Made by a program: the position numbers and the translations under genes. This document shows positions 1 to 53,283 of a stretch of DNA of 64,000 bases, piece after piece. The notes beneath the pieces are model-generated. The model was not told the DNA's origin and searched no databases. It was given only the letters and a program-made list of their open reading frames with translations. How positions within the stretch are numbered: the first letter of the stretch is position 1; each line of letters starts with the position of its first letter. Where the stretch lies: IMG/VR virus record IMGVR_UViG_3300044972_002389, positions 62,001 to 126,000 of that record; one strand, 5' to 3'.

Positions 1-29
1 AAAAGCGACATGACTAGGTTTCAACTCAC

Positions 30-371
30 ATGGCTATAAACGAGATTCGCTGGCAAGACATCTTTGTGGAGAAGGTGCATGAGTTTGAAAAAGTGCTGCC
101 CATCTACAGGTGGTGCCTAGAAAGCTGGGGCAAAGAAGTGCCCGCCAATGCCTACACGTGGTTCAGGGTAGTGTTCTCAGCTGGTGAGCCCGGTGGTTGG
201 ACCAACAGTTGGCGAGACAGTGGCTTCAGCTTGATACACATGAACAGCAAGGTAATTGAAGACATCAAAGAGGACGCGGGAAGCTATCCGGACCTACTGA
301 AACGCTTCCCACTCTATGTTCTATTTTATAGCCAAGAGGCAGTAACTGAGTTTCGGTTGACCTGGCAATAA
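30..371 (+). CDS. Small hypothetical protein, probably of the 'F..E.D...F.L.W' C-terminal-motif family
   Basis: 113-aa ORF ending LFYSQEAVTEFRLTWQ, like the ends of ORFs at 59414-60359 and 63439-63639. Confidence 0.55.
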   Translation: MAINEIRWQDIFVEKVHEFEKVLPIYRWCLESWGKEVPANAYTWFRVVFSAGEPGGWTNSWRDSGFSLIHMNSKVIEDIKEDAGSYPDLLKRFPLYVLFYSQEAVTEFRLTWQ

Positions 372-374
372 GTT

Positions 375-1451
375 TTGACGCAACAGCAAACTATGTTAAA
401 AAAGTGTGTAACACAGGAGACTCTGGTGACTGACAAGCGAATTGGTTTTTGCTGTAAATTTGTATCTGAAACAGAGTTCAAAGACAAGAAGAGCGCAGCA
501 GAGTGGCACAGCCTCTACAACACAAAAGGCACAACTGTAACCTCACTGGAAAAGCTCACACGTACACAAGCCATTGACAAGCTGTGTGGCATTGTGCGCT
601 ACAACACTGAGGTACTTATGAGGCAGTTTCAGCTTGTAGGCAGTTGGCCACAAGAACTCCGAATGATGCGAATTGGCAGTGAGATTCTCCCTGCTCGCAC
701 ACACGCCAATTGGAGCTCTGCCTATCAAGAATCTGTGATGATTGAAGCACTGCGCGGATTTGGGGAGGTAGGCAAACTAGCACGTGACTTCGACATTCGA
801 CTCAGCACGCATCCTGGACAGTTCACTATGCTTGTGAGTCATGAGCCCGAGGTGGTGGAGCGTGCTATTGAAGACCTCGAGTACCACTCGGAGATTTTCC
901 GGCTCATGGGCTTTGATGGAAGTGATCAGCGACAGGAGATCAACATCCATGGTGGTGCCCGTCGAGACGATTTCCTTGATTACTTTCAACACAGCTTTGC
1001 TCGGCTGAGCAGTGACACAAAGCAATGGCTGAGTGTGGAGAATGATGAGTACAGTTACGGTCTCGATCATCTCTTGCCCTTGAAAGACAAGGTGAAGATC
1101 TGTCTCGACATCAACCACTACTGGATTCATCAAGGAACGTATCTCAGTCCAGATGACCCAAGGCTGACCCAGGTGATTGAAAGTTGGCGTGGTGCACGTC
1201 CAGAAATTCATGTGGCTTGGCCGCACGAAGATGTACTTCCCTCCCACAGCAACACAACCAGGCCAGACATTGCGTTGCTCGAGTCAAGTGGTATCAAACG
1301 AAGCAAGCTGCGTGCCCACAGCAAGCGACCTTGGAACAAGGCGTTGAACAGCTACTGTCTTGAGTTTTGGGATAGGATGGATCTCATGTGCGAAGCCAAG
1401 GAAAAGAATTTAGCTGCTAGAGAATTATATGACTATTCTCAAACACTATAA
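375..1451 (+). CDS. uvsE: UV-damage endonuclease (UvsE/UvdE family)
   Basis: Motifs RIGFCCK, MMRIGSEILP, RLSTHPGQFTML, INIHGG, LSVENDE, LDINHYW, HVAW, LRAHS and DLMCEAKEKNLA fit the UVDE TIM barrel; TTG start. Confidence 0.9.
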   Translation: MTQQQTMLKKCVTQETLVTDKRIGFCCKFVSETEFKDKKSAAEWHSLYNTKGTTVTSLEKLTRTQAIDKLCGIVRYNTEVLMRQFQLVGSWPQELRMMRIGSEILPARTHANWSSAYQESVMIEALRGFGEVGKLARDFDIRLSTHPGQFTMLVSHEPEVVERAIEDLEYHSEIFRLMGFDGSDQRQEINIHGGARRDDFLDYFQHSFARLSSDTKQWLSVENDEYSYGLDHLLPLKDKVKICLDINHYWIHQGTYLSPDDPRLTQVIESWRGARPEIHVAWPHEDVLPSHSNTTRPDIALLESSGIKRSKLRAHSKRPWNKALNSYCLEFWDRMDLMCEAKEKNLAARELYDYSQTL

Positions 1452-1454
1452 ATA
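1447..1454 (+). promoter_or_regulatory. T4-type late promoter TATAAATA
   Basis: Exact T4 late consensus upstream of aaggag SD and the ATG at 1495. Confidence 0.7.
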
Positions 1455-1494
1455 ACCACTTAAACCATCTTTTATACCAAGGAGCACATATGAG

Positions 1495-1875
1495 ATGAAA
1501 AACCTACCAAGCTGGGGCAAACATTTGGTCGTCGATGCAGCAGGGTGCAATGAAGCCATCAACGACAAAGAGACTGTAACCAAATGGGTTGACCAACTGG
1601 TTAACGATATTGATATGATTGCATTTGGTCGACCAGAGATTCATTGGTTCGCAGACCACGATGTTACTAAAGCTGGTATCAGTGCTGTGCAACTTATTAC
1701 TACATCGGCTATTGTATGTCATTTTGTACCTCACACTTGGACACTTCACCTAGACGTGTTTTCTTGTAAGGACTTTGATTCCAATATTGTGCTCAAGCTG
1801 TTGCAGGAATATTTTGGGGTGAAAGCTTGGAATATCAAGGAGTTTGAACGCGAAGCTCCTGACCTCAATAGCTGA
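1495..1875 (+). CDS. speD: Pyruvoyl-dependent S-adenosylmethionine decarboxylase-like proenzyme (SpeD/SpeH family)
   Basis: GKHLVVD..GC, GISAVQLITTS.I..H and LHLDVFSCKDF motifs; the autocleavage site reads TTSA instead of the usual ES(H/N). Confidence 0.8.
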   Translation: MKNLPSWGKHLVVDAAGCNEAINDKETVTKWVDQLVNDIDMIAFGRPEIHWFADHDVTKAGISAVQLITTSAIVCHFVPHTWTLHLDVFSCKDFDSNIVLKLLQEYFGVKAWNIKEFEREAPDLNS

Positions 1876-1897
1876 ATTATATTATAAGGAAAAAGTA

Positions 1898-2485
1898 ATG
1901 CTTATAGGTTATGCAAGGACTAGCACACATGAACAATCCGCAAGTCTAGAATCTCAAATTGCAGCATTGCAACAGGCTGGGTGTGAAAAAATCTTCGCAG
2001 AACAAACCAGTGCTGTTGGAAGTAGACCGCAGCTCACCGCAGCGATGTCATATATTCGTGAAAAAGATGTGTTTATGGTTACACGAGTAGACCGGTTGGC
2101 TCGAAGTACATCAGATCTTCTCAAAATTGTAGAAGATTTGGAAAAGCGAGAAATTGGCCTAATAGTGCAGAGCATGAACGGCATGGAATTAGACACACGA
2201 AATGCAATATCCAAGTTGATGCTGACTGTTTTAGGCGCAGTAGCAGAGTTTGAGCGTCAAATGATGCTTGAGCGGCAGCGAGAGGGCATCGCCAAGGCAA
2301 AGGCAGAGCGGCGCTACAAGGGCAGGGCGCCAACAGCACGCAGGCAGCTGGCTGAGATTCAGTCACTAAAATCCCAAGGGGTTGGTGCAAGTGAGATCGC
2401 AAGGCGGCTTAAGATCAATAGGTCAAGCGTTTATCGAGTGTTGGCACCAAACTCTGTTATCAGCCCACTGGTTCAAGGTAAGTAA
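1898..2485 (+). CDS. Serine recombinase (resolvase/invertase family) with C-terminal HTH
   Basis: N-terminal LIGYARTST (catalytic Ser), RPQL, VTRVDRLARS, AVAEFER..MLERQREGIAKAK..Y.GR and HTH SEIARRLKINRSSVYRVL; ATG 1898 follows aaggaa SD. Confidence 0.92.
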   Translation: MLIGYARTSTHEQSASLESQIAALQQAGCEKIFAEQTSAVGSRPQLTAAMSYIREKDVFMVTRVDRLARSTSDLLKIVEDLEKREIGLIVQSMNGMELDTRNAISKLMLTVLGAVAEFERQMMLERQREGIAKAKAERRYKGRAPTARRQLAEIQSLKSQGVGASEIARRLKINRSSVYRVLAPNSVISPLVQGK

Positions 2486-2504
2486 GTATAATGGCCACTG
2501 GTAC

Positions 2505-2768
2505 CTAATCTTCAACTATCAACAATTTCAAATCCCCTGAGCCCTTCAATAGTCTATGGAAGGTGTCTCGGGGGATTCTCACGACATCGCCGGGCTTGAG
2601 ATTGCAGGGCATGCAGTTGTCCATTTGAAGTTGCCAACCATTACCCTCAACCACTGTAATAAGTCTGTGACAGTGATCTCGATGCCACACTAGCTCATGA
2701 GAATCTACAGATTGAAAGAATGTTCTTTCCAAACCTTGAATTTGTTTCTTGTCACTGTAGGGATTCAT
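2505..2768 (-). CDS. Small cupin-fold protein
   Basis: WHRD...V.EG.GWQLQ and PGD...IP...FHRL.KG cupin-like motifs; ATG overlaps the upstream stop as TAATG at 2770-2766. Confidence 0.7.
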   Translation of the reverse strand: MNPYSDKKQIQGLERTFFQSVDSHELVWHRDHCHRLITVVEGNGWQLQMDNCMPCNLKPGDVVRIPRDTFHRLLKGSGDLKLLIVED

Positions 2769-3346
2769 TACCACCATTTGGCACTAATTGGACTCAATCC
2801 CAAGGATTTAGTATAGCGGGGAACTCTACACGCCCAGTATCCAGCCTTCATTTTGTCTGTTTTTTGTTCACAGTTGTGACGAGAAGCAAACGCTTTGCGT
2901 CGTTTGGGATCGCGGATTTTAACACTCAAACCTGACACATCACCAAAGGCAATTTTTTTGACCCTGCCTGTTTTGGGATTCTTGACGTAGACGTAATACT
3001 TTTTAGGACCGCCTCTCTTGGGCTTGTTAAGCTCAACAGCTTTTCCTTGATACTCAGCCTCATCAAGACTTTCTGGAGTTTCAAAAATACAATCCAACGG
3101 AACCATTCTGCCTTCATACACACCAAACGTGCCTAAATCACTCTCAATCATGTCCTGGTCAAGAGCGTGTTCCAAGAGTATATCTCCACAAGAAACACGA
3201 CGTCGCATCTCACAAAAAAACTCAAACCAAGCTGGGCTGTGAATACGGAATATGTTATCAACTAGCGGAACTTTGTTATCCTGGTGCCATTGAATGGCTT
3301 GATTTACACTTTCATTCAAAGGTTGCGTAAGGTCTTGAATTTTCAT
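2768..3346 (-). CDS. Two-module putative internal head protein (PLNES / SLDEA linkers; basic Cys-containing C-terminal module)
   Basis: Starts MKIQDL, has LNES and LDEA junctions like the proteins at 4833-12554, and follows a minus-strand TAAATA at 3377-3382. Confidence 0.7.
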   Translation of the reverse strand: MKIQDLTQPLNESVNQAIQWHQDNKVPLVDNIFRIHSPAWFEFFCEMRRRVSCGDILLEHALDQDMIESDLGTFGVYEGRMVPLDCIFETPESLDEAEYQGKAVELNKPKRGGPKKYYVYVKNPKTGRVKKIAFGDVSGLSVKIRDPKRRKAFASRHNCEQKTDKMKAGYWACRVPRYTKSLGLSPISAKWW

Positions 3347-3376
3347 TTGGTTTCCCAGATCTTGAAACGTTTGTGT

Positions 3377-3382
3377 TATTTA
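3377..3382 (-). promoter_or_regulatory. Late promoter core TAAATA (minus strand)
   Basis: tattta on the plus strand, upstream of the ATG at 3346. Confidence 0.55.
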
Positions 3383-4111
3383 GAAACCAAAATGCTCTTG
3401 TAAGATCTTGTCTATTTTGTGCAGTTGTTGAGTTACAGGCCCTAATAGGCAGTGAGTCCAGTGAGAAGGAACTATCGGAGGCAAGTAGCCGTCAATGTCC
3501 CGATTTAAATTTAACACGTTGATTACACTAGGACAATCCAACACTTTTGCGAAGTTATCAACAGGAACAACTGAGCCTGATGTTCCAATACACAGGAACA
3601 GGCTTTTGTCTGTAAGGCTGTCCAGTGTGTTGTAGAGATATTGGTATTTGGGTGCTGGTTCACCAAACAACACTACCGCAGGCTTGACATCAGTCAGGCT
3701 TTGGCAATTGGGACAACCTAGGGAGATGTTGTATCGAGTGTAGCCAATATTCCAAACATGGCCACAGTTTTCGCATTGCATTTCATCCAGCTGTCCGTGA
3801 ACATGCACAACAGGGATGCAACCAGCCTCCTCTAGCAAGAGGTCTGCATTTTGAGTTATCACTGTTGCACTGTATTTTCTCTGCCATTCTGCCACCTGTT
3901 TGTGGGCGGCGTTTGGCTGAAACTTCAGAAGCATTTCCCGTAAGTCGCTGTGAAATTCATTTACAATTTGAAAGTTTTGTCGCCAAGTGGCGTAATTACT
4001 GTAAACCAATGGATCATAACGGCTCCATAAACCTTCGCTATCTTCTCTAAATGTGGGGATGCCGCTTTCAGCACTCAAACCAGCGCCGCTAAAAATCAAT
4101 AATTGGGTCAT
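3380..4111 (-). CDS. Sir2/CobB-family NAD-dependent deacylase
   Basis: FSGAGLSAESGIPTFR, PNAAH, ITQNAD, HVHG, Zn ribbon CENC/CPNC, KPAVVLFGE, IGTSGSV; likely start MTQLLIF at 4111. Confidence 0.92.
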   Translation of the reverse strand: MTQLLIFSGAGLSAESGIPTFREDSEGLWSRYDPLVYSNYATWRQNFQIVNEFHSDLREMLLKFQPNAAHKQVAEWQRKYSATVITQNADLLLEEAGCIPVVHVHGQLDEMQCENCGHVWNIGYTRYNISLGCPNCQSLTDVKPAVVLFGEPAPKYQYLYNTLDSLTDKSLFLCIGTSGSVVPVDNFAKVLDCPSVINVLNLNRDIDGYLPPIVPSHWTHCLLGPVTQQLHKIDKILQEHFGF

Positions 4112-4197
4112 AATTTTGATTATGCAACAAATTTCTGGAGGGTTGCAATCCAATTCTCATGTTTACTGCCTTTGTATTGTGCTCACTGTCCAGACAA

Positions 4198-4203
4198 TAA
4201 ATA
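4198..4203 (+). promoter_or_regulatory. Late promoter core TAAATA
   Basis: Ends 4 nt before the ATG at 4208; heads the 4208-12554 plus-strand run. Confidence 0.6.
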
Positions 4204-4207
4204 TACT

Positions 4208-4846
4208 ATGCCATATTTGAATCATAATATCCCCGTTTTAACATGCCTAATACGTAACCAATACCTTTACAATCACACCAAAGGCCACGGCGAGTTCACT
4301 CCCTGTGATGTACACAGTGTCGCAAGTATGGAGAAACGCACGCCTTTATTTGAAGCATTTTTGGAAAATGGAGTGAACTGGACACGTCGACCCATAACTG
4401 CTTTTTGTTGGCGTAATGATGCACCAGTAAGACCACTTGCAGAACATGTTTATTGGGACTGTTTCAGTCATTATATTGATGTGCAGGTCCGGCAACGCAT
4501 GGCGGGGTTAAGGGCTACGTTGTTGGTTTACACTGGGGAACGTCGTCAAGGACAATACTGTATGACTTTAGACTGGGGTTGGGAAAACTCTGCTTTTACT
4601 GACACCAATTTCAGTGAAACGCCTGAACACAAATGCGCGCATTTGTTCAAAATGGATGAAGGAAACTATTATCTTTATCCCAACAATAGAATCATTTGGC
4701 ATGACAATGCTTGGGTGAAAAATCCTATAACCAGTAATCCTGGGTATCAAATAGACATGACAGTCTACAGTGTGGAGAACGCTGTGGACTTTTATACAGA
4801 TGACAGCTATATGACACATGTGGAGCCTGTAAATGAAGCTGGTTGA
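4208..4846 (+). CDS. Conserved phage hypothetical protein
   Basis: MPYLNHN...IRNQYLYNHTKGHGEF...PLFEAFLENGVNWTRRP resembles a family I recall from T4-like phages; function unknown. Confidence 0.75.
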   Translation: MPYLNHNIPVLTCLIRNQYLYNHTKGHGEFTPCDVHSVASMEKRTPLFEAFLENGVNWTRRPITAFCWRNDAPVRPLAEHVYWDCFSHYIDVQVRQRMAGLRATLLVYTGERRQGQYCMTLDWGWENSAFTDTNFSETPEHKCAHLFKMDEGNYYLYPNNRIIWHDNAWVKNPITSNPGYQIDMTVYSVENAVDFYTDDSYMTHVEPVNEAG

Positions 4847-7800
4847 TATTTTGGAAAACAAGGAGGACCAACAGAATCAAAAACCCAGTGTGTTCAGCCA
4901 GTGGGAAGACACTGACCCAAAGAATGACAAGCCGGAAGAGTCAAAAAATAATCCCAGTGAACTCTATCATAGCACTATACTAGACAATGCGCCTAATATC
5001 CTGCAATCAGGATATATAACAACCTCTATCTACAAAGATCCAGCCAAGGATATAGTGTTTGATTCTCGCTCTACAACACCCCATACATCACCAACTATAG
5101 CTGTTCTCACTTCTTGTGGGACACTGATGCAAACCTACAACGAACAAATTTCTCGCCAGCTAACGACGGCAAGCAGTCAACTGGGAACGCAAAGCAAAGC
5201 CTATCGAGCCTTGCGTGCCATCAGTCACGTTTTGGAATCACAGAAGCTTTTTGAAAACGATCCACAACTAGGTAACAACAGCATTTGGCTCTACACTGAA
5301 GGTTGCCAAAGTGCATTGCACATACTGCTCGACAACAAGACAGCAAAAATCACTTGGTTAGGTAGTTTGAATGGCACTGGTAGGCAACTTTTGGAGCAGG
5401 GGTTAGCACAAAGCCAGAAACAAGGTGCCTTACTCGCTGTTGTGAAACCCATCTGGAACAGCCACAAATTTTATGAGAAGATGGGATTTCAAGATCAAGG
5501 AACTGGTTATTGGAACTTACCTCTTGAGGAATCAGCTAATCAACTGGATCGCGCAGATCTAGAAGACTTATTGGGTGCAATCACATATGAGCAAGAAGAG
5601 ATTAACGACGCCAGCTATGATGCTGCGGGACCAAAGTATGAAAAACTTGACAAGGATTTCAAAGCCTTAGAGGCTGTTGCTTATGTGGTTAAAAATAACT
5701 TACGAGCACTTGACAATCCCAACTTGGGAAAAAATAGCATTTTCCTCTATAACTATACCCCAGATCTAGGCGTGTTCAGTGTAACTGCAATACATGTGGT
5801 GATTGAAAATCAAGTGGCGCATGTGAAATGGTTGGGCAGTTATGACAACAAACCTGGTGCTGGCAAAGCGTTGATGTTACAAGCCTTGACTATCGCAAAG
5901 AACAAAGGGGCCACCAAGAGCGTCGTAGAGGCCAAATGGGAAAGCGAAGGCTTTTATCACAAGCTGGGTTACGATGTGGAGAACAGAGGATCAAACAACC
6001 CATTTACAGGCACCAGTTTAGTCCAAATGGGAAAGAAGTTGGAAGAAGCTTGGACTGATGAAGACCAGCGTATGGTTCACAAAAATCCCACAATTCAAGA
6101 TTTGAAAAGGTTGGCACGCAACAACAAGTATCACAGTGCCAGATTTGTGATCTACAAAGATGGCAGTGTTGTGGCTGCGGATAGCGAACATTATACTCAC
6201 CACAGTGCTGCACCTGCCATGGGCGCTTGGGCTTTGAGAGGGTATGTGCAATACTTGGGTGGCAACGACTATGCCTATCGCAGCATGGAAGTCTACAGTC
6301 CCAAAAGTGTTGACCATCCTCTTTTCCGCAAGTGGGAATCTAGTGGTATAGAGAATGGCAATCCCTCTGTTGTTGAGGAAAAATGGACCAAAAAGTATAA
6401 GAAGAGTATCAACTGCTCTAATCCTCAAGGGTTCAGCCAACGTGCTCACTGTGCTGCTAGACGCAAACGACAAAAGGGCGGAAAGACAACTAGCAAGCCC
6501 TTGAATGAAAACAATAACGTAGAAATACACAACTATAAAAAGCTGGATCGCATCTTAGTTGCATTGTGTAACCTAGTTGACACCAGACGAAAGAAAAACC
6601 CTGACAAATACGGATGGGTAGCCGCAGGGTTGTTGGATCCCCGCAACCGTCTTGTAATAGGTTTCAGCACATTTGCCAATGACAAATGGTATCATGCTGA
6701 ACGATTGGCTATGAGGGCTTATCGTAAAAAATACGGAAGCATACCTGATGGCTGTATAATTGTAACCACATGCAGTCCATGCAGCGAGCAGATGCCAAGA
6801 TATGGTGAAAGTTGTACTGACCTAATCAACAAGAGTCCTGTCAAAAAAGTCTATTGCGGCTACTCTGATACAACTCAATCCCAAAGTCAACGCACTTTCA
6901 ATATTATGGTTACTGCTGATACAAACATACGAGAACGGTGCCAAAAATTTGCTGAAAACTTCATGGATTGGGAAGCGCAATATTTGGATGAAAGCTTGCG
7001 TGATTGGTTCAAACAAAAATGGGTGCGATTTGGGACAGATGGCAAGATCAGAGGCGACTGTGCTAGAGGCAGTGAAGGCGAAGGCAAGCCCAAATGCCTG
7101 CCACAGCGGAAGGCTTGGGCACTGGGCAAGAAAAAACGTGCAACTGCTGCTAGGCGCAAGCGTAGAGAAGATCCCAATCCTGAACGTGAAGGCAAGGCCC
7201 GGAACGTAGCCACAAAAGAAAGTGTTGGCTCTACAAAATTGGGAGATCTCTGCACTATCAAAACTAATTTTCCTGATGCTGACTTTTGGCTTGTGCGACG
7301 CAGTGATAGAACAAATGTGGGCACACCAGCCAAAGAATTCAGTCCCTATCATATTGGAATCAAAGTCACAGCTACTGAACAGCTGATGCCAGAATATCTC
7401 TACTATATGATGATGCATCTCCACAACCAAGGCTATTGGAACAGTCGAAGCATGGGCATGAGCAATCTTGTGCACATACGCACAGAAGATGTGAAAAACA
7501 TACAACTGGCTTTGACAGAGCATGAGCTGAAAGAAAACTCCAGTTGTCCACATTGCGGAGGCCAAATGGTTAACTACTCTATGCTCAGTGAAAAACAAGA
7601 TGCCTGCTACTACAAAGTCAAGAGTCGCTACAAAGTTTGGCCCAGTGCCTATGCCAGCGGTGCATTAGTGCAGTGCAGGAAAAAGGGTGCAAAAAACTGG
7701 GGCAAGAGCAAGACAAATGAAAGCATAAGCATTGATCAACAAGAGGAACATGGAGGTCTCGAAGCCTACATAACTGATACATCTACCCCACAATTGGTCA

Positions 7801-8561
7801 ATTATCTTGCAAGTGAAAATGCACCCGCCGACCTTGCAGAAAAATTGCAACGCAGATACAAAACAATAGCTGTGTTCAAAAACATATGGGTCGAGGAAGA
7901 TCATCAAGGGTCTGGAGTAGGTAGCTGGATTTTAGAGGCTGGTATTGGGGATGCAATAGACAACCAGGCTCATGCTGTCATTCTCACTGCTGTCTCAGAT
8001 GATCCCAAAAGACAATCACAACTTGAGAAATGGTATAAGTCTTATGACTTCAAAGAAATAGCTCGCAGTTCAACTGGGTATCCTGTGATGTTACTAGATT
8101 TAAACAAAGACCAGGTCTCAGAAGCTGCCCCGTGGCTCGGGCAGGGAGATGAGCCACTGCCCACTAAACTCTATCATGTCACAAGAACAAGAAACCGTTT
8201 GAGCATACGCCAGAGAGGACTTGTTCCCAAAACAAAGGAACATGATCATATATTGCGACAACCAGGTGTGTTTCTGTTTGAAACTTTTGAACAAGCTGAA
8301 GATTGGGCTTACTATTGGAGTCAAGATGAGGGCGAGAGTATGGATATATGGGAAATCAAGGTTCAAGATCCCAATGATCTAACTCCTGATCCAGCATTGG
8401 ATATTCAGCACGATTACGATGCATGGGTCATCTACAAGCCAATTCCTGCAGCCAATGTGAGGCTGAAATTTACGCAACGCTGGCCGGAACCTTGGGGAAA
8501 GCCTACTACAACGGTGAAAAAAATCCGCAACCTTGAAGAAGATCCTAATGAAACTGAATGA
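4833..8561 (+). CDS. 1242-aa modular protein: GNAT, GNAT, unknown, basic Cys module, Zn-deaminase, basic module, HsdS/TRD-like, Zn ribbon, basic module, GNAT, ART-like
   Basis: GNAT A/B motifs (GTGRQLL..FYEKMGF; GAGKALM..FYHKLGY; QGSGVGSWIL..WYKSYDF), HAE...SPC deaminase motif, LYHVT..GLVP ART-like motif; modules bounded by LEES, LEEA, VVEE, LNEN, LDES, TKES, LTEH, LSEK, TNES, VSEA. Confidence 0.85.
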   Translation: MKLVDILENKEDQQNQKPSVFSQWEDTDPKNDKPEESKNNPSELYHSTILDNAPNILQSGYITTSIYKDPAKDIVFDSRSTTPHTSPTIAVLTSCGTLMQTYNEQISRQLTTASSQLGTQSKAYRALRAISHVLESQKLFENDPQLGNNSIWLYTEGCQSALHILLDNKTAKITWLGSLNGTGRQLLEQGLAQSQKQGALLAVVKPIWNSHKFYEKMGFQDQGTGYWNLPLEESANQLDRADLEDLLGAITYEQEEINDASYDAAGPKYEKLDKDFKALEAVAYVVKNNLRALDNPNLGKNSIFLYNYTPDLGVFSVTAIHVVIENQVAHVKWLGSYDNKPGAGKALMLQALTIAKNKGATKSVVEAKWESEGFYHKLGYDVENRGSNNPFTGTSLVQMGKKLEEAWTDEDQRMVHKNPTIQDLKRLARNNKYHSARFVIYKDGSVVAADSEHYTHHSAAPAMGAWALRGYVQYLGGNDYAYRSMEVYSPKSVDHPLFRKWESSGIENGNPSVVEEKWTKKYKKSINCSNPQGFSQRAHCAARRKRQKGGKTTSKPLNENNNVEIHNYKKLDRILVALCNLVDTRRKKNPDKYGWVAAGLLDPRNRLVIGFSTFANDKWYHAERLAMRAYRKKYGSIPDGCIIVTTCSPCSEQMPRYGESCTDLINKSPVKKVYCGYSDTTQSQSQRTFNIMVTADTNIRERCQKFAENFMDWEAQYLDESLRDWFKQKWVRFGTDGKIRGDCARGSEGEGKPKCLPQRKAWALGKKKRATAARRKRREDPNPEREGKARNVATKESVGSTKLGDLCTIKTNFPDADFWLVRRSDRTNVGTPAKEFSPYHIGIKVTATEQLMPEYLYYMMMHLHNQGYWNSRSMGMSNLVHIRTEDVKNIQLALTEHELKENSSCPHCGGQMVNYSMLSEKQDACYYKVKSRYKVWPSAYASGALVQCRKKGAKNWGKSKTNESISIDQQEEHGGLEAYITDTSTPQLVNYLASENAPADLAEKLQRRYKTIAVFKNIWVEEDHQGSGVGSWILEAGIGDAIDNQAHAVILTAVSDDPKRQSQLEKWYKSYDFKEIARSSTGYPVMLLDLNKDQVSEAAPWLGQGDEPLPTKLYHVTRTRNRLSIRQRGLVPKTKEHDHILRQPGVFLFETFEQAEDWAYYWSQDEGESMDIWEIKVQDPNDLTPDPALDIQHDYDAWVIYKPIPAANVRLKFTQRWPEPWGKPTTTVKKIRNLEEDPNETE

Positions 8562-11442
8562 CCTATTGAACAAGCCTACCAGTAGCGTAGCTGAGCTGGC
8601 TAAAAAATACAAAGTGTCAACAGACTCTGTGGAGAAACAGCTGGCACAGGGCATCAAAGTGGAGATGGAACACACCCGGTTGCGGAGTGTGGCGCGAGAA
8701 ATAGCCTTGGATCACTTGGGTGAGGATCTTAACTATTACAAGAAATTGAGCAAACTTGAGAAAAAGCCTGCTCAAGAAGCTCTTCTGATAGAGCTGTTTG
8801 CCCTGCTAAATGAAGTAAAAATCGACAATGTGAGTGGCATTGGGGAAGTGCCTGACAATAAGAATGTGGATTATCTTGGCTTGAGAGTCGCGATGAAGCC
8901 CAGTGTATTTTTGAAATTGGCTAGCCCTTTGTCAAGAGAACATGCTGGGAGTGTGGATTATATCAAACAGCAACTAGATCAAGGGCAGGGAATGGCCAGT
9001 CCTTGGCTGGTCTTAGACATACCAATAGAATGGGAAAAAGGTCGTTATAATAAATCCGCAAGAGTAATTGGGCACGAAGGCCGCAACAGAATGTATGCGG
9101 TCCTAGAAACTGAAGGCGATGCACCTGTTGAAACTCATTTGTTTTTTGTCGGTGGATTGCGTGCTAGGCACATCAAACCTGAATGGATTGAAGCACTCAA
9201 CCTGCGTCTTGTACCACAGAGAGCAAACACTAGTGTATCTGGCCCGTTTTTTGAACTGCTGTTAAAGACTCAAAAAAGTCTCTCAGAAGAAAATGAAAAC
9301 AAAAGAGACACATACCGTGTAACCTGGAGAGGTAGATTGGGCGAATATGATCCCAATTATTTTGACATCAAAAGTGACCCACTTGAAGACGATGATGGCA
9401 AAGTCATCGCCGTAAAAGATCAGCTTGTTCCCAAATCTCATTTGCGTGCCAATTTAAACATAACTCCAAATCCCAACCTAGTGTATAGGGGCATGAGTAA
9501 TCATGAATTTCAAAATATCAAAAAAACAGGAGTGATACAAAGCAAAGGCGAGTATAACTTGGCTGGGCAACAGGGCTTAACCTATTTTTCAACTGAACCC
9601 AGGTCAGCTGAAACTTATGCTCATAGTTTTGCACCATGGAATCAAAAAGCCAACTGGGACAATCCAGCATGGGTAATTGCAGTGCCCAAACCTGATGAAT
9701 CAAAAATTGTGCATGTGCAAGGCACAGGATCACATGAAGTGGGAGTCAAAGGCTCTATACCAGCGAATCAAATAAGGGAGATATACCGAGGAAAGGTTGT
9801 AGAATACGATCCTGGTGTGCACAACCAAGTTGCACCATCAGCATGGCTGCATTGGGAGAAAATGCCTGTTGATACATTGTTAACAGAGCGCAAAGGTGCG
9901 CCTGGCACTCTCAAATCCAAAATCACCAGACTGTATGGCGGAGGTGTCACATGTGACAAAACACAAAAACTCAAAACACGCCAGGGTGCTACAACTCTAG
10001 ACAAACGCCAAGCCAACTGGTTTCAAAACAAACATTGCGGCGGAGCAACTAGAGTTGATGAAATCATAAGTGGTGAGCATATTCCAGGCGATTGGAAAAA
10101 ATATGGAAGCGGCGACGCAGAAATGTTTGAAACAGAGTTTGATCTTCAAGGATATAAGATCACAATAAGTGTGAGTCGGGATTGGGCCCAATCTGGTGCC
10201 TATGTGTTGATGAAGAAAAACATAGAGGCTGGAGCAAACCTGGTTGGCAGAGAAATAATATTCAGGGTAGATGGCGAAACTGATCCAACAGGCTTACTAG
10301 GCACAGGTGCAGCGAATGTAATTTCAATTGTTGTAGGAAAAATCATAGGACTACTACAAAATATAGAATGGGACTATTTGGTCTTCGCAGGTGCTGGGGA
10401 CAGTAGACAAAGAGTATATACTAAAATATTGAGTCAGATATCTCCAGGACTTGATTCAGAGCCAATGCAATTTGGAGATTGGTTCCTGCTGATCAAAAAC
10501 CATTTGTTGGCAGCAAAATCTCAAGAGCTGGATGAAGTTTTTAAAGGCAAGCCACTTCCTGGAGATTGGCAATCAATAAAGGGCGGTTCAACCCACTACA
10601 CTGAATTTGAATTTGCTGGCAGTGAAGTGCAAATAGCAGTCGTAAAAGACGCTTCTTATGAGCTTCAAACTATCTTGCAAAAGCAAGTGCCAGAAAACTG
10701 GGTTGGATATGAAGTGTCCTTCTCTGTAGATCACAGCATCTCTGTAACAGGTATGTTTGACCAAAAAAGTGCCCAATTATTTGATTTGATTATACGAAAA
10801 CTCAAATGGTTTTTCCAGACCCACAGCTGGGACTACATCAACTTCAGTGGGGATGAGCGCAGCCGCAACAAGCTCTATCTCCGGCTGGCAAAACAGTTGG
10901 CACCTGCTGATAGCACAGTGTTGCACACTAACAAAAGCTTTGCAATTGTCAAGCAGGACAAGCTTGCATCATTCACTAACTTGGACGAAAGTTTAAGTTA
11001 CAAAGGTTTGCGTCCTGGAGCAAATATTTGGTATGAGCCTGGCATGCAATATTCCCAATATAATTTATATCCAGGCAAAAGTATTGTGGGCCAGCGAGTA
11101 TACCATATGACCAATAAGCTTACAAGTATAATAAAGTCAGGCGGACTGAAACCAAAATATGATGAGACTGGTGCTAGAGAATTTGGCCGATATAGCACTG
11201 TGGAATATCCTTTCACTCCAGTTATTGCTATATTTTTTGATGTTGGTGAGCATGATTGGTTTGGCAAATACATCTTAAGTTGGGAAATAACACCTGAGGA
11301 TAAAACTGCACGAGCATATATGCCAGTAGATACCATGCAGCCTTCAGATAGAGATAATTTGCTGCCCAATTGTCAGGTAACACCTGTAAGTATTGATAGG
11401 ATTACTATCACAGATCTCAAAGGAAACCTTATAAAAGTATGA
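8548..11442 (+). CDS. ~964-aa modular protein: small helical domain, ParB-like, ART-like (YRG/YFST/E), basic Cys module, two copies of an unknown domain, ART-like (VYH/GLKP)
   Basis: Probable start MKLNDLLN at 8548 overlapping the previous stop; IGHEGRNR ParB-like motif; junctions LNE, LSEE, LTE, VDE, LDE, LDES. Confidence 0.85.
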   Translation: MKLNDLLNKPTSSVAELAKKYKVSTDSVEKQLAQGIKVEMEHTRLRSVAREIALDHLGEDLNYYKKLSKLEKKPAQEALLIELFALLNEVKIDNVSGIGEVPDNKNVDYLGLRVAMKPSVFLKLASPLSREHAGSVDYIKQQLDQGQGMASPWLVLDIPIEWEKGRYNKSARVIGHEGRNRMYAVLETEGDAPVETHLFFVGGLRARHIKPEWIEALNLRLVPQRANTSVSGPFFELLLKTQKSLSEENENKRDTYRVTWRGRLGEYDPNYFDIKSDPLEDDDGKVIAVKDQLVPKSHLRANLNITPNPNLVYRGMSNHEFQNIKKTGVIQSKGEYNLAGQQGLTYFSTEPRSAETYAHSFAPWNQKANWDNPAWVIAVPKPDESKIVHVQGTGSHEVGVKGSIPANQIREIYRGKVVEYDPGVHNQVAPSAWLHWEKMPVDTLLTERKGAPGTLKSKITRLYGGGVTCDKTQKLKTRQGATTLDKRQANWFQNKHCGGATRVDEIISGEHIPGDWKKYGSGDAEMFETEFDLQGYKITISVSRDWAQSGAYVLMKKNIEAGANLVGREIIFRVDGETDPTGLLGTGAANVISIVVGKIIGLLQNIEWDYLVFAGAGDSRQRVYTKILSQISPGLDSEPMQFGDWFLLIKNHLLAAKSQELDEVFKGKPLPGDWQSIKGGSTHYTEFEFAGSEVQIAVVKDASYELQTILQKQVPENWVGYEVSFSVDHSISVTGMFDQKSAQLFDLIIRKLKWFFQTHSWDYINFSGDERSRNKLYLRLAKQLAPADSTVLHTNKSFAIVKQDKLASFTNLDESLSYKGLRPGANIWYEPGMQYSQYNLYPGKSIVGQRVYHMTNKLTSIIKSGGLKPKYDETGAREFGRYSTVEYPFTPVIAIFFDVGEHDWFGKYILSWEITPEDKTARAYMPVDTMQPSDRDNLLPNCQVTPVSIDRITITDLKGNLIKV

Positions 11443-12554
11443 GAATTTACCATTTAGTGCCCTTAAAGAAGTTGCTAGAAGCTTATCAGCCATTGACAAC
11501 CAAATGGCAACAAGACAATGTGGGCTCAGTTTCAAGATATATTACAAGCTTTGAGTATGATGACCATTTAGTCGAACAAAGACTTACTCAAGATAAAAAT
11601 CAAAAAGACTTACAGGATGCATTGGCTGCCAGTGATTTAGAGCCCAATCCACAAGCCAAGGGCTATGTTTGGTTATGGACAGTGGATGGGGAAATAGAAC
11701 AAACTGGCACAATGGGCCTTAAGGCCATACCCTTGTGGAAAGAATTGGTGCGACGCCTCTTTGGTTGGCTTGGATCTCATGAATGGGACTACTTGACTTT
11801 TATTGGTGGACGCGGCAGCAGGAACAAGCTCTATAGCGCATTGGGTCAAATGTTGGCGCAGAGAGCTGGTGCCAAAGTATATTTTGATTTTGACACAAGT
11901 GACTTTGTTGTATATAAGCCCAGTGCAATAGTTCAACCAAAATTGCAAGAGGCTTTTGATTACCAACTTCCCCGGGATAAATGGAAGATAAAAACAGAAG
12001 GCGACAGCTATATTGATTTTTTGTTTGAAATTGATGGCAACGAATACGAGCTTCGAATGTCTCGATTGCAAGAGCCTCAGAAGAGGGGTATTTACGAGGT
12101 GGAATTTAGGCACACAGAGTATGGCATGGACATAAGTGGCACAGGTTCAGCCTTTAAAGTCTTCAGTGCTGTGTTTCAACTTCTCAAGTATGCTATTGAT
12201 CATCAAAAAACCTTACCTGTAAATGGACTTTGGTTCCAGGCTTGGGCCCCGAGCAGGAAAAAGCGTTATAAGAGTATGGCACCAAAATTAGCAAGACATC
12301 TGGGTTGGACTTGGGTAACCAAGCAAGAGAGTTTTCCCTACTCTCTCTCGCCAGGAACAGATGGCTACTTGATTCTCAAACCCAGTCTTGGCGAAACAGC
12401 TGGTGTGGGCAAGATAGTTAAAGGTGTGAACACTACCACCGATGTGGGACCTGATGCTGTTCAAAAACAAGCCCGGAAATTTCTCAACAAAGTCACAGCA
12501 GGAGGAGTTCCTCCTCAAACTCAAAGCAATGGCAAATTTCCCTCGGTTAAATAA
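11439..12554 (+). CDS. 371-aa modular protein with two more copies of the unknown 'TG...SR.KLY' domain and a short basic tail module
   Basis: WDYLTFIGGRGSRNKLY and GLWFQAWAPSRKKRY parallel the two domains at 10063-10980; junctions LLEA, LQEA, LGET. Confidence 0.8.
   Translation: MRIYHLVPLKKLLEAYQPLTTKWQQDNVGSVSRYITSFEYDDHLVEQRLTQDKNQKDLQDALAASDLEPNPQAKGYVWLWTVDGEIEQTGTMGLKAIPLWKELVRRLFGWLGSHEWDYLTFIGGRGSRNKLYSALGQMLAQRAGAKVYFDFDTSDFVVYKPSAIVQPKLQEAFDYQLPRDKWKIKTEGDSYIDFLFEIDGNEYELRMSRLQEPQKRGIYEVEFRHTEYGMDISGTGSAFKVFSAVFQLLKYAIDHQKTLPVNGLWFQAWAPSRKKRYKSMAPKLARHLGWTWVTKQESFPYSLSPGTDGYLILKPSLGETAGVGKIVKGVNTTTDVGPDAVQKQARKFLNKVTAGGVPPQTQSNGKFPSVK
12548..12553 (+). promoter_or_regulatory. Late promoter core TAAATA
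   Basis: Overlaps the previous stop; 7 nt before the ATG at 12561. Confidence 0.55.
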
Positions 12555-24940: not shown

Positions 24941-25015
24941 GTCTGCTACATTACGGTAGCAAATTGGTGGAAACACCCGTTGTGCATAAACGACAGATGC
25001 TTTGAAAGGAAAGAT

Positions 25016-25696
25016 ATGAGCTATAATCGCACAAAATGTGATCCTGAACTGGGTCGCAAAGTACATGAATACCTAGTTTCCAAAGGGGTTGAAACCCCAA
25101 CAGTGGAAAATTCCCTAAGCCGCACAGACAAAATTGATATTATTGAACGCAAGTTCAAGGACATCATGGAAACAATGGGCTTGAATCTATCAGATGATAG
25201 TTTGGCTGAAACGCCGACACGAGTGGCTCGCATGTTTATCCAGGAACTTTTTTGGGGTCTTGATTGGGAAGCTTTCCCCAAGTGCACCACTGTTGCCAAC
25301 AAAATGGGCTATGATGAAATGGTGTGTGAACGAAATGTCACTGTCAAAAGTGCCTGCGAACATCACTTCATTGTGATTGATGGTGTAGCAACTGTGGCTT
25401 ATATTCCCAAAGAAAAGGTATTGGGCCTAAGCAAGATCAATCGAATTGTCGAATACTTTAGCCGCCGACCACAAATTCAAGAGCGTTTGACTGAGCAGAT
25501 CTTTCATGCAATGGAATATATCCTGGAAACCGATAGCATTGCTGTCGTCATTCACGGCAAGCACTATTGCGTAAGTCATCGTGGCGTTGAAGATGATTGC
25601 AGCAGCACAGTTACCAGCAAGCTGGGTGGTGCGTTCAAACAGGATCCCAGTGCTCGTGCTGAATTTATGAAGATGGTTGACTTGACCTCTCTCTAA
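25016..25696 (+). CDS. folE: GTP cyclohydrolase I
   Basis: LAETPTRVARMF, VKSACEHHF, GLSKINRIVEYFSRRPQIQERLT, HYCVSHRGV, RAEF; aaggaaag SD. Confidence 0.95.
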   Translation: MSYNRTKCDPELGRKVHEYLVSKGVETPTVENSLSRTDKIDIIERKFKDIMETMGLNLSDDSLAETPTRVARMFIQELFWGLDWEAFPKCTTVANKMGYDEMVCERNVTVKSACEHHFIVIDGVATVAYIPKEKVLGLSKINRIVEYFSRRPQIQERLTEQIFHAMEYILETDSIAVVIHGKHYCVSHRGVEDDCSSTVTSKLGGAFKQDPSARAEFMKMVDLTSL

Positions 25697-30147: not shown

Positions 30148-31029
30148 ATGTTTGGACGCAATGAGCTGGTTGGTGAACGTTACTTCAAAAATGCAGAAGA
30201 TGAACTTTTTGTAACTAGTATTTTCACCACATTTCAGGGAGAAGGCCCATATCGAGGCGAGCCTGCTGTGTTTGTTAGGCTAGCCAAGTGCAATCTCCAA
30301 TGTTCATTTTGTGATACTTTCTTTGATGATGGTGATTGGATGACAATCCAAGAGATTGACTCCAAAATCGCAAAGAGCATCTCTGACAGCTTCAATGGTA
30401 ATACCCCTCTTTGGGCTGATGTTGTGTATGGGGGTCCAGGAAGTGATCCTGTAAAGAAACGCAACATGGTTCTCGTGCTTACTGGCGGTGAGCCCATGCT
30501 ACAAAAAAACATTGTTCCATTTTTAGAGCATATGAATACCCAGTTTGCCCGAACGCAAATTGAAAGCAACGGCACTATCGTCCAGAACATTCCTCAGGAA
30601 ACTACCTTAGTAGTAAGTCCCAAGTGCAGTGAAAAAAATGGCCGTCCGGTGAAATATCTTGAACCACGAGCAGAAATGCTAGGAAGAGCAGACTGTTTGA
30701 AATTTGTAATGAGTGCAGATTCTGATACTCCTTACAATAATGTCCCTGACTGGGCACACAACTGGCGGGACCAAACTGGTAAGAAGGTGTTTGTAAGTCC
30801 CATGAACATTTACAACCATGAACCGCAGAAAAGCAAGCAAATTCGAGCTGAGAAAAATCAAATTAGTCTTGAAGAACGCAGTATTGTGGATGAAGTTGTG
30901 AGTTTTTGGACGCCAGGGCTTATCAATATGCAAACTGCTCAAGCCAATCACGAACACGCTGCTCGTTATTGTGTCCAGAACGGATTCGTCTTTAATATGC
31001 AATTGCATTTATTTGGAAGTTACGCCTAA
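30148..31029 (+). CDS. queE: 7-carboxy-7-deazaguanine synthase (radical SAM)
   Basis: IFTTFQGEGPY.G.PAVFVRL, CNLQCSFCDT (CxxxCxxC), LTGGEPMLQ, IESNGT, VSPK, MQLH. Confidence 0.93.
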   Translation: MFGRNELVGERYFKNAEDELFVTSIFTTFQGEGPYRGEPAVFVRLAKCNLQCSFCDTFFDDGDWMTIQEIDSKIAKSISDSFNGNTPLWADVVYGGPGSDPVKKRNMVLVLTGGEPMLQKNIVPFLEHMNTQFARTQIESNGTIVQNIPQETTLVVSPKCSEKNGRPVKYLEPRAEMLGRADCLKFVMSADSDTPYNNVPDWAHNWRDQTGKKVFVSPMNIYNHEPQKSKQIRAEKNQISLEERSIVDEVVSFWTPGLINMQTAQANHEHAARYCVQNGFVFNMQLHLFGSYA

Positions 31030-43537: not shown

Positions 43538-46500
43538 CTACACACCTTTGGCAGTGAGTGCAAGTTCAAGAGCTGTCACACGCTGATTGAGCTGATCGTT
43601 GCTTTCAGCCAACTCTTGCACAGCTCGAATCAACACAGGGAACACGTTAGCTACTGTGGCTTCAAGCTTCTCTGGGTTGTCCTCAAGCACCAAATGCAGC
43701 CAGTCTTGTAGATTATATCGATTGCTGACTTCCAGTACTTCTTGAGCAATAAATCCAGCGCTCTTGACCCCTACTCGGCTGCCATCTCTAGTATTCCATG
43801 TGAATTTTACTGGACGTAGATCACGTATCAGCTGCAATCCCAAAGGAATATCTTCGATGTCAGTTTTGTCTCTAGCATCAGACAAAGCAGTAATAGTAGT
43901 TACCTGAGCTCGCAGTGTAGTAATGCTGGAATCACCAAAAGTTATTGTGTTGTTGCTGGTTGCTGTTGCTCCACTTGCACCGCATCCCAAAAACACGTTG
44001 TTACTGCCATTTGTGTTGCTCGTACCTGCTGATCGTCCTATTGCAGTGTTGTTTGTGCCATTGGTATTCTGCTGTAGGGCAGCGCCGCCAATTGCTATGT
44101 TTGAATTGGTGGTATTGTTCCTTAGAGCACATGCCCCCAATGCAATGTTGTCACTGCCACAAAAGTTAGTGCCAAGGGCATCAAAGCCCAGGCCTATATT
44201 ATTGATACCACTTGTATTAAATTGGAGTGCCCAACAACCAACTGCAATGTTATTGCTACCAGTTGTATTGCATCGTAGAGCACAAGCACCGATAGCTGTA
44301 TTATTACTACCATTTTGGTTGCAACAAAGCGCAGCTAGGCCAAATGCCATGTTAAATAGCCCAGTGCTGCTGGTATTGGATGTGCCTATTTTATAACTGC
44401 TAGTGCAGTCCAAACACGCATATCCACAACAGCCCACAGGGTTGCCGTTTATAGCAAATCCATTCCCATCTATAGCCAGTCGCAGACAACTGCCAGCAGC
44501 AATCAGCACACAAGATACACTGCCTGCTGCTGGTGTTACATTGCCAATTACCGTGTTGTTGAACCCAGTTGTGATCAGACTTCCAGCGTTTTGGCCAATT
44601 GCTATGTTACATGTTCCAGTGGTGTTGGCAGTCAGCGCACCAATACCCAGTGCTATGTTACCAGTCCCAGTAGTATTCTGCTGTAGGGCAGCGCCGCCAA
44701 TTGCTATGTTTGAATTGGTGGTATTGTTCCTTAGAGCACATGCCCCCAATGCAATGTTGTCACAGCCACCAGGGTTAATTCCAAGGGCATCAAAGCCCAT
44801 GCCTATGTTATTGTTACCACTTGTATTAAATTGGAGTGCTAAACAACCAACTGCAATGTTGTGACACCCGCTAGTATTGCATCGTAGAGCAGACGCACCG
44901 ATAGCTGTATTGCTACAACCATTACGGTTGCAACAAAGCGCAGCTAGGCCAAATGCCATGTTAAATAGCCCAGTGCTGCTGGTATTGGATGTGCCTATTT
45001 TATAACTGCTAGTGCAGTCCAAACACGCATATCCACAACAGCCCACAGGGTTGCCGTTTATAGCAAATCCATTCCCATCTATAGCCAGTCGCAGACAACT
45101 GCCAGCAGCAATCAGCACACAAGATACACTGCCTGCTGCTGGTGTTACATTGCCAATTACCGTGTTGTTGAACCCAGTTGTGATCAGACTTCCAGCGTTT
45201 TGGCCAATTGCTATGTTACATGTTCCAGTGGTGTTGGCAGTCAGCGCACCAATACCCAGTGCTATGTTACCAGTCCCAGTAGTATTCTGCGATAGGGCAA
45301 AGTAACCAATTGCTATGTTGCAACCGGTGGTGTTTGAGCAAAGGGCCAATGCCCCCAATGCTATGTTGTCACTTCCATTCAAGTTAGTGCCTAGGGCATT
45401 AACTCCCATGCCTATGTTATTGCAACCTAGTGTGTTGAATTGAAGTGCCAAACAACCAATTGCAATATTATGAGACCCGTTCTGGTTGCATCGTAGAGCA
45501 GACGCACCGATAGCTGTATTGCTACAACCAGTTAAATTACAACAAAGCGCCCCTTGGCCAAATGCCATGTTAAATGTCCCAGCACTGCTGGACATAAATG
45601 TGCCTATTTTATAACTGGAAGTGCAGTCCAAACATGCATATCCACAGCTACCAATAGATGCTCCATTAACATAAAGCCCAGTTCCGTCTACTCGCAGTCG
45701 TTCACATGCGCCAGCACCAATCAATACAGTGCAAACCAAACCCCCGGTGCCAGACAAATTGCCAATTACCGTGTTGTTGAACCCAGTGGTTATTAGGGAG
45801 CCAGCGTTTTGGCCAATTGCTATGTTACATGTTCCAGTGGTGTTGGCAGTCAGCGCACCAATACCCAGTGCTATGTTAAATGTGCCATTGGTATTCTGCT
45901 GTAGGGCAGCGCCGCCAATTGCTATGTTTGAATTGGTAAGATTGTTCCTTAGAGCACATGCCCCCAATGCAATGTTGTCACAGCCACCAGGGTTAATGCC
46001 AAGGGCATCAAAGCCCATGCCTATGTTATTGTTACCAGTTAGGTTTAATTGGAGTGCCAAACAACCAACTGCAATGTTATTGCTACCAGCAGTATTGCAT
46101 CGTAGAGCAGACGCACCGATAGCTGTATTGCTACTACCATTACGGTTGCAACAAAGCGCACCTAGGCCAAATGCCATGTTATATAACCCAGTGCTGCTGG
46201 ACATAAATGTGCCTATTTTATAACTGCTAGTGCAGTCCAAAGACGCATATCCACAGCTACCAATAGATGCCCCATTAACATAAAGCCCACTTGAGTCTAC
46301 TTTCAGTCGTTCACAACTGCCAGCACCAATCAATACAGTGTTATTCAAACCCGTAGTGCCAGACAAATTGCCAATTATTGTGTTGTTGCACCCAGTTGTG
46401 ATCAGACTTCCAGCGAGTTGGCCAATTGCTATGTTACATGTTCCAACGGTGTTTGCACCTAGCGCACCAATACCCAGTGCTATGTTAAATGTGCCACTGC

Positions 46501-52210: not shown

Positions 52211-52221
52211 ATAATTGCCTC

Positions 52222-52251
52222 AATAGGCGGAAGTTATTTCCGCCTATTTTT
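52222..52251. terminator. Bidirectional terminator
   Basis: AATAGGCGGAA-GTTAT-TTCCGCCTATT plus T-run, overlapping the HNH stop. Confidence 0.8.
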
Positions 52252-53169: not shown

Positions 53170-53283
53170 GCTGAATGCTCCTTCATAGCGTTTAGAGCGG
53201 TCGGAGAGGTTAGAGGCTCGCGGACCGCAATTGTATTTAGTGTCAATTTTGACACGTACACACATAATTGTACAAACTCTGCT

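Follow-up and report, generated by a model that had tools for sequence, protein, structure and literature searches.

Chains of enzyme modules with prohead-protease-type motifs at their joints: probable packaged cargo of a T4-related jumbo phage

The head proteins Alt and IPI-III of phage T4 are matured by the prohead protease gp21 (MEROPS S77), which cuts after Glu. In the capsid-targeting sequence (CTS) of T4, which is 10 residues long, positions 4 and 7 determine targeting and positions 8 and 10 determine processing; Alt is processed at its two ends and the core proteins are cut repeatedly (PMC9026906). Internal proteins of T-even phages are diverse anti-defence proteins which share the CTS alone (PMC3012670). 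The proteases of phiKZ and SPN3US likewise cut after Glu (PMC5694885). Polyvalent proteins are polypeptides of phages and plasmids that carry 2 to at least 15 distinct, mostly enzymatic conflict domains each (PMC5512222). The present work concerns three adjacent open reading frames (ORFs) in a stretch of 64,000 nucleotides (nt), positions 62,001 to 126,000 of the IMG/VR virus record IMGVR_UViG_3300044972_002389, below called the window. ORF1 (4833-8561, 1242 amino acids, aa), ORF2 (8548-11442, 964 aa counted from its ATG) and ORF3 (11439-12554, 371 aa) lie on the plus strand, and their neighbouring ends overlap by 14 nt (ORF1/ORF2) and 4 nt (ORF2/ORF3). We consider it probable that they encode polyvalent cargo polyproteins which are cut by the head protease, packaged and injected by a jumbo phage of the T4 superfamily.

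ORF1-3 share with the cargo of T4 a short leader ending in an aliphatic residue, any residue and Glu, the residue after which T4 cargo is cut. Further likeness lies in diverse cargo sharing the leader alone, in basic Lys-rich parts and in an enzyme of the ADP-ribosyltransferase (ART) type (PMC9026906, PMC3012670). Each T4 cargo protein is, however, encoded by a separate small gene and has one propeptide (two cuts in Alt), whereas in ORF1-3 7-12 modules are chained per polypeptide and every joint has a putative internal site of its own. No sequence homology links ORF1-3 to the T4 proteins. With polyvalent proteins (Iyer et al. 2017, PMC5512222) they have in common many effector-type domains per polypeptide (GNAT, ART, deaminase, ParB-like), extensive domain shuffling and a predicted delivery with the DNA. 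In addition, a homologue of residues 248-447 of ORF2 (46% identity) is contained in the 'large polyvalent protein' from Planktothrix phage Pag-Yong1, and ART-PolyVal (PF18760) is recorded in the homologue P0146. Polyvalent proteins are proposed to be processed by their own embedded zincin-like metallopeptidase, while the joints of ORF1-3 carry the head-protease motif instead, and no virion genes lie alongside. Thus ORF1-3 agree with the definition of polyvalent proteins except for the embedded peptidase and the virion-gene neighbourhood. The ejection and inner-body proteins of phiKZ, 201phi2-1 and SPN3US (gp175/gp245, MEROPS S80) are also jumbo-phage head proteins cut after Glu at a three-residue motif, some of them ejected with the DNA (PMC5694885). 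They differ in having one long propeptide or few cuts, at (S/A/G)-x-E or A-x-E, in the lack of strings of unrelated enzyme modules, and in phage lineage. Viral polyproteins of the picorna-like type, one product cut by a virus protease at a short motif into several proteins, resemble ORF1-3 in function only, as ORF1-3 would supply accessory cargo and not a replication or structural set. No description of polyvalent proteins with a prohead-protease motif at the joints was found in the literature searched.

Junction motif, module exchange and leaders

The sequence-only reading had placed a short motif ending in Glu at almost every domain boundary of ORF1-3 and listed 20 copies, selected out of 47 [LVT]xE sites. 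All 20 were found exactly at the given nucleotides, and about 17 of them are true module boundaries, on the basis of gene splits and swaps, junction contexts and dips in AlphaFold confidence. TKE796 is doubtful, TNE963 atypical and LEE1236, at the end of ORF1, weakly conserved. One copy, read earlier as 'VVEE', is present, with V514-E515-E516↓K517 as the actual site (the arrow marks a cut or a junction).

A search of 5.8 billion proteins gave 924 multi-domain homologues, many of them on contigs of 200-460 kb. The residues upstream of each module were taken for each homologue and related flanks were collapsed, which left 144 independent junction contexts from more than 120 homologues. Position P1 was Glu in 138 of these (96%), and P3 was Leu (95), Val (20), Ile (15), Met (4) or Thr (3), together 137/144 (95%). 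P2 was free and P4-P7 were acidic or polar. The background frequency of the motif is 0.0245 per position. This preference at P3 and P1, with P2 left free, was seen across more than ten unrelated module families, and junction copies were kept in 54-100% of the aligned rows, while copies inside modules were poorly conserved. The proposal that the joints carry a motif of the T4-type prohead protease was thereby borne out also where the flanks are unrelated. Homology breakpoints, determined with BLAST against relatives, formed 22 clusters, of which 10 fell on the motif where 4.2 were expected (p=0.004; strict window of ±4 residues); control tripeptides gave no comparable excess. AlphaFold models of ORF1 and ORF2 were built on these homologues. 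All six ORF2 sites fell in segments with a predicted local distance difference test score (pLDDT) below 50, i.e., residues 70-88, 240-248, 446-452, 499-503, 656-661 and from 810 onwards. In the well-modelled part of ORF1, dips at 514-516, 557-561 and 719-723 part confident domains at three junctions.

The Pag-Yong1 homologue of the ART-like module belongs to a 65-kb phage that is not T4-like, and its borders lack the L-x-E motif. The motif is thus a property of the lineage, not of the fold. The Pag-Yong1 polyvalent protein (2772 aa, coded at 3-8321 of its locus L001) has the pentapeptide RESAR on both sides of this module, at residues 1093 and 1297 and nowhere else; it may be a junction or processing motif of its own, or a trace of module insertion.

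That the ORFs are strings of separable modules was confirmed by splits, swaps and losses in diverged metagenome relatives (labelled L005, L010, L011, L014, L042 and L043), where modules were gained, lost, moved between ORFs and split into genes exactly at the junctions. The equivalent of ORF1 in L011 and L014 consists of two genes, the second of which opens with a short leader and then reads ...LEE↓KWTKK. The equivalent of ORF2 is split in the same two relatives, with a gene starting MKLWDFLQE↓VKIDN where the window reads ...LNE↓VKIDN. There, the ART-like module of ORF2 is placed in the ORF1-like gene, behind a position equal to ORF1 residue 511. GNAT-3 is cleanly missing in L005, L010, L011 and L014, the deletion edges being TNE and VSE, and five ORF1 modules are permuted in L043. 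Pfam content of the 924 homologues was varied and included PARP, ParB, NUDIX, sigma-70 and nucleotidyltransferase.

Modules which head a gene carry a leader of 4-16 residues ending in the junction motif, such as MKLWDFLQE↓, MLLFDLLE↓, MSSVNQLSE↓, MLAE↓, MQTFKQFLSE↓ and MHLFE↓. Leaders of the polyproteins fell into two classes, MKLxDLLE and MSNILKGLNE. The similarity of N-termini noticed earlier was upheld: [LIVMF]xE with its Glu at residue 4-12 was present in 44 of 78 distinct homologue N-termini, compared with 46 of 310 control ORFs (15%; Fisher p=4e-13). These leaders are compatible with the published rules for T4; in the T4 CTS, Asp at position 10 blocks cutting. In the window, the leader of ORF1 ends ILE8 and that of ORF3 LLE14, each in the manner of a short propeptide. 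ORF2 likewise starts MKLxDLL, with a first motif, VAE16, that is not conserved. The idea of one shared packaging signal became doubtful, since some stand-alone modules have leaders of only 4-5 residues. These suggest that a leader may not direct packaging by itself, a role that could instead fall to the basic modules. A further protein with such a start is encoded on the minus strand at 2768-3346. It comprises 192 aa, starts MKIQDLTQPLNE, and its leader ends L-N-E at residue 12; CTAAATA is found 30 nt upstream, and the gene adjoins one for a SIR2-family NAD-dependent deacylase (3380-4153, minus strand). We regard it as a further candidate for a packaged protein.

The modules of ORF1-3

ORF1-3 contain three GNAT domains, a cytidine-deaminase fold, DUF5661, four DUF6934 copies, and ART-like and ParB-like folds. 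Above the Pfam thresholds were the three GNAT domains, the cytidine/dCMP-deaminase and DUF5661. The four DUF6934 copies were identified from repeat alignment and homologue annotation, the ParB-like and ART-like modules by fold search against viral models. The fold search also gave structural homologues in Atu_ph07, a phage with a published virion proteome (PMC6102473). Pfam at lenient thresholds on single modules gave nothing usable for most of them, and neither did a sequence search of three modules against PDB chains. Foldseek with the ORF2 model against PDB gave no significant match, and with the ORF1 model the deaminase alone was recognised. No peptidase family was found in ORF1-3 with Pfam, NCBIfam and PHROGs, and no HExxH; an embedded autopeptidase was rejected on these grounds.

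ORF1 starts with the leader MKLVDILE (4833-4856, aa 1-8), a putative propeptide or capsid-targeting leader ending in I-L-E, of a type that heads many homologues. A low-complexity N-terminal part with GNAT-1 (4857-5531, aa 9-233; Pfam FR47 and Acetyltransf) ends LEE233↓S, where 3/4 contexts had the motif, and GNAT-2 (5532-6047, aa 234-405; Acetyltransf_10, 38.9 bits) ends LEE405↓A (4/4 contexts). The next, an alpha/beta module ending VEE516↓K (6048-6380, aa 406-516), was delimited by breakpoints, junction contexts and AlphaFold. A Lys-rich helical mini-module (KWTKKYKK...; 6381-6509, aa 517-559) ending LNE559↓N occurs in about 125 homologues, with the motif in 47/48 contexts on its N-side and 31/33 on its C-side, and a pLDDT of 82-91. 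It precedes the domain with a cytidine/dCMP-deaminase fold (6510-6992, aa 560-720; PF00383, 38.7 bits), which ends LDE720↓S and which Foldseek matched to RibD deaminase (E=4e-7), as well as to TadA and T4 dCMP deaminase. A basic Trp/Cys module (LRxWFKxKW...; 6993-7220, aa 721-796) had near-invariant columns and the motif in 47/47 contexts at its N-junction; its end at TKE796 is doubtful as a cut site. The module at 7221-7520 (aa 797-896), ending LTE896↓H, was delimited by homologue breakpoints. It is followed by a zinc-knuckle-like peptide with CPHCGG (7521-7592, aa 897-920), ending LSE920↓K, with the junction motif in 21/21 independent and 59/59 distinct contexts. A basic DUF5872-like module (7593-7721, aa 921-963) ends TNE963↓S, where Glu is conserved and P3 atypical. 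GNAT-3 (7722-8123, aa 964-1097; Acetyltransf_7, 51.9 bits) ends VSE1097↓A, and the last module (8124-8540, aa 1098-1236) gave a faint signal of Tpt1/KptA, of the ART superfamily, with a possible C-terminal cut at LEE1236. The Lys-, Trp- and Cys-rich mini-modules at 517-559, 721-796 and 921-963 were nearly invariant and present in almost all homologues. All three occur in one 456-aa protein of Synechococcus phage S-RIM2 (L144, 4605-5975), the gene of which has structural genes around it, with those for the small terminase subunit and a virion protein on either side.

ORF2 starts with DUF5661 (8548-8814, aa 1-89; Pfam, 44 bits), which ends LNE89↓V and is found in many phages alone or in other fusions. 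The ParB/sulfiredoxin-like fold (8815-9288, aa 90-247; ParB/Srx matches in BFVD, pLDDT 86-96) ends LSE247↓E and has a homologue in Ralstonia phage RsoM2USA, a stand-alone gene of 165 aa with the leader MQTFKQFLSE. The ART-like module (9289-9888, aa 248-447), with an R...S-T...E pattern, ends LTE447↓R; weak fold matches were to CARDS toxin and a T4-type 'RNA polymerase ADP-ribosylase'. A small basic Cys-containing module (9889-10062, aa 448-505) ending VDE505↓I was delimited by breakpoints, contexts and AlphaFold. Two DUF6934-type repeats follow (10063-10989, aa 506-663 and 664-814), aligned to each other, with [LV]DE before and after each; their pLDDT of 63-91 dips at 656-661, homologues are annotated with PF22028, and LDE814 was kept in 16/16. 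The C-terminal module (10990-11439, aa 815-964) gave no confident AlphaFold model. In ORF3, the leader (11439-11480, aa 1-14), ending LLE14↓A, is followed by two DUF6934-type modules (11481-12395, aa 15-171 and 172-319), which end LQE171↓A and LGE319↓T and were aligned with gp135 of phage PA5oct. A small C-terminal module (GVGxxVKGVNTT...; 12396-12551, aa 320-371), also found in Phosso, was preceded by [LV]xE in 5/5 independent contexts.

Head protease, phage and genome context

The window phage is a jumbo phage related to T4 (T4 superfamily), with identical IMG/VR contigs of up to 328,603 bp. The family-B DNA polymerase encoded in the window was closest to those of Agrobacterium phage Atu_ph07 and Sinorhizobium phage Phosso (46%), followed by Rak2-like phages. 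These are 'group 2.2' jumbo phages with gp23-type capsids and phage sigma factors (PMC7824862). Peptidase_S77 and a gp23-type major capsid protein (MCP) are present in the clade indicated by the polymerase, and the two adjoin there; one clade member, at locus L134, has the same gene order as T4, namely portal, small core proteins, Peptidase_S77, scaffold, Gp23. T4 gp23 is cut after LTE65. The alignment with this site (LTE↓A) gave LME↓N in Atu_ph07 and LRE↓S in the Rak2-like pEa_SNUABM_47, and L-x-E (or L-F-E) stood at the cleavage position in all of the best 80 MCP loci of the clade in IMG/VR. Head-core proteins at locus L134 begin MFINNLFE↓, MNKYEQLIE↓ and MALLLKE↓, and the leaders of the polyproteins are of the same kind. 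The scaffold protein of L134 had 29 motifs in 366 aa, or 79 per 1000; for the tail-like ORFs downstream the figure was 0-4 per 1000. It was also observed that core proteins, protease and MCP at 6844-11173 of this locus all have leaders of 7-9 residues ending aliphatic-x-Glu. In PA5oct, gp135 is a stand-alone homologue of the DUF6934 type which starts MHLFE and is annotated as a virion protein by electrospray ionization tandem mass spectrometry (ESI-MS/MS).

An MCP at locus L070 was considered as that of the window phage and rejected; it was on no contig of 0.2-1 Mb and thus probably belongs to another phage. The MCP lies about 5 kb upstream of the polymerase in Rak2-like phages, and synteny with Rak2-like phages, Phosso and Atu_ph07 gave no usable prediction of its position. 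A near-identity DNA search with the ORF1-3 region against isolated phages gave no match.

On one side ORF1-3 are flanked by SIR2, resolvase, ligase and glycosylation genes, on the other by the DNA polymerase. The window also encodes 7-deazaguanine, glycosylation and replication genes. GTP cyclohydrolase and QueE-like radical-SAM genes lie at 24980-25696 and 30148-31029, and several glycosyl-, carbamoyl- and methyltransferase genes are present; together these suggest 7-deazaguanine DNA modification and an extensive glycan chemistry. A highly repetitive fibre-like protein of 2378 aa, with up to 23 repeated stretches and PHROG matches to 'tail spike / virion structural protein', is encoded at 43538-50674 on the minus strand. 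Genes of mobile-element type (UvdE-like endonuclease, resolvase/invertase, HNH and homing endonucleases) are dispersed at 375-1451, 1844-2485 and 50948-53265.

A TAAATA late promoter had been proposed in front of the run of ORFs. A T4-late-promoter-like decamer, CAATAAATAT, is indeed present at 4194-4203 on the plus strand, and relatives have similar motifs, but it precedes the gene upstream of ORF1 and not ORF1 itself; its function is presumed from likeness. In L011 this decamer recurs 35 nt before a split polyprotein gene, and among L011, L042 and L043 the decamer or a similar TAAATA motif precedes polyprotein genes by 30-36 nt. Elsewhere in the window phage (L148, 9962-9969) a perfect TATAAATA was found 33 nt upstream of an 85-aa gene. 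This gene heads six RCC1-repeat fibre-like genes, and Peptidase_S74 and Phage_tail_APC genes come before them. The perfect motif before fibre genes indicates that T4-type late promoters are probably in use. A late-promoter consensus of the clade was not derivable from upstream of the MCP genes, which directly follow the scaffold gene. Late expression of the polyprotein genes is suggested by these motifs, and we take them as suggestive only.

Proposed explanation and alternatives

The modularity of ORF1-3, the conservation of the junction motif, the leaders and the protease motif at the capsid maturation site of the clade were observed directly. Cleavage, packaging, injection and the timing of expression we infer as follows. 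The linkers between autonomous modules would carry a site of the T4 type (Peptidase S77), with an aliphatic P3, any P2 and Glu at P1. The polyproteins would be made late in infection and be brought into the prohead core by the short N-terminal leader, perhaps by the basic modules too. During maturation the head protease would cut them into about 20 pieces, and at infection these would exit with the DNA and act on the host, like T4 Alt and the internal proteins.

There are several observations that weigh against this explanation. Firstly, no Peptidase_S77 and Gp23 of the window phage itself were found in about 119 kb (the window, 37 kb to its left and 18 kb to its right). The phage was not among the best 80 MCP loci of the clade, and none of these shares genes with the window. 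ORF1-3 are surrounded by replication and modification genes and by no head module. Secondly, the motif is of ordinary density in ORF1-3 (47 in 2577 aa, i.e., 18 per 1000; the other ORFs of the window have 14.6 per 1000), so an overall excess was rejected. It is the placement alone that is unusual, and the claim therefore depends on where the copies sit. The junction statistics, moreover, overstate independence, because the motif is inherited together with each module. Thirdly, single sites deviate. TKE796 is probably no cut site, because it reads TxK in 62/89 homologues; at TNE963 Glu was kept in 47/55 homologues, yet P3 was K, T or S, i.e., polar and not aliphatic. In the homologue of the T4-like cyanophage S-RIM2 the junctions are not strict L-x-E. 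Finally, the gene that precedes ORF1 has its first ATG 5 nt from CAATAAATAT and a true start that is uncertain, which makes the role of the motif doubtful.

Among the alternatives, the polyproteins may be cut and packaged with products that are mainly internal components of the head, the enzymes being passengers or acting in the producing cell or the capsid. The three small basic modules, which are the only parts found in nearly all of the more than 900 homologues, point in this direction, as do the basic internal proteins of T4, the lysines of which contact DNA (PMC3012670), and the position of the S-RIM2 homologue among structural genes. The variable modules are, however, typical host-directed enzymes (GNAT, deaminase, ART-like, ParB-like) and are shuffled rapidly, like conflict proteins, and packaged proteins of T4 are also ejected. 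We hold this alternative for unlikely.

The polyproteins could also act uncut, with [LIV]xE as a structural linker or helix cap, or as a by-product of recombination at short conserved DNA. Such an explanation agrees with the overall motif density, which is not raised, and with the full-length delivery of N4 vRNAP and the polyvalent proteins of ArdC type (PMC5512222). It does not agree with the same P3 and P1 around a free P2 in more than ten unrelated module families, nor with stand-alone modules preceded by leaders of 4-10 residues that end in the motif. Furthermore, the junction motif equals the capsid maturation site of the clade and does not flank the homologous module of Pag-Yong1, a phage of a different type. 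It seems to us quite improbable that the polyproteins act uncut. Cutting in the cytoplasm by a host protease or another phage protease, giving ordinary unpackaged intracellular enzymes, would suit the replication and modification gene context with no head genes nearby, but is very improbable given that Glu at P1 with an aliphatic P3 is the signature of the S77 prohead protease, which acts inside proheads (PMC9026906), that the PA5oct homologue is a virion protein, that the leaders resemble those of head-core proteins, and that late-promoter-like motifs stand at canonical spacing upstream of the split genes of relatives.

We thus prefer the explanation of ORF1-3 as cargo polyproteins cut by the head protease, packaged and injected. 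Extended beyond this phage, it would imply a general, not yet described plug-and-play cargo system in jumbo phages of the T4 superfamily. Hundreds of polyproteins would consist of modules each with its own head-protease site, the three invariant Lys-rich modules would be a common capsid anchor, the protease would double as releaser of the arsenal, and fission and fusion at the L-x-E joint would add, drop or exchange effectors. We offer this extension tentatively, as a possibility that is rather doubtful at present. If the proposed explanation is true, it joins polyvalent proteins, the processing of which had been ascribed to metallopeptidases of their own, to the capsid targeting and gp21 maturation of T4, which so far were treated separately. 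The small basic modules, all three of them nearly invariant and found in over 900 proteins, would be candidates for packaging anchors, and aliphatic-x-Glu joints together with short leaders would provide a simple rule to predict packaged cargo in metagenomic phages. It would also explain the large and fast-evolving set of host-takeover enzymes which is carried in the capsids of jumbo phages.

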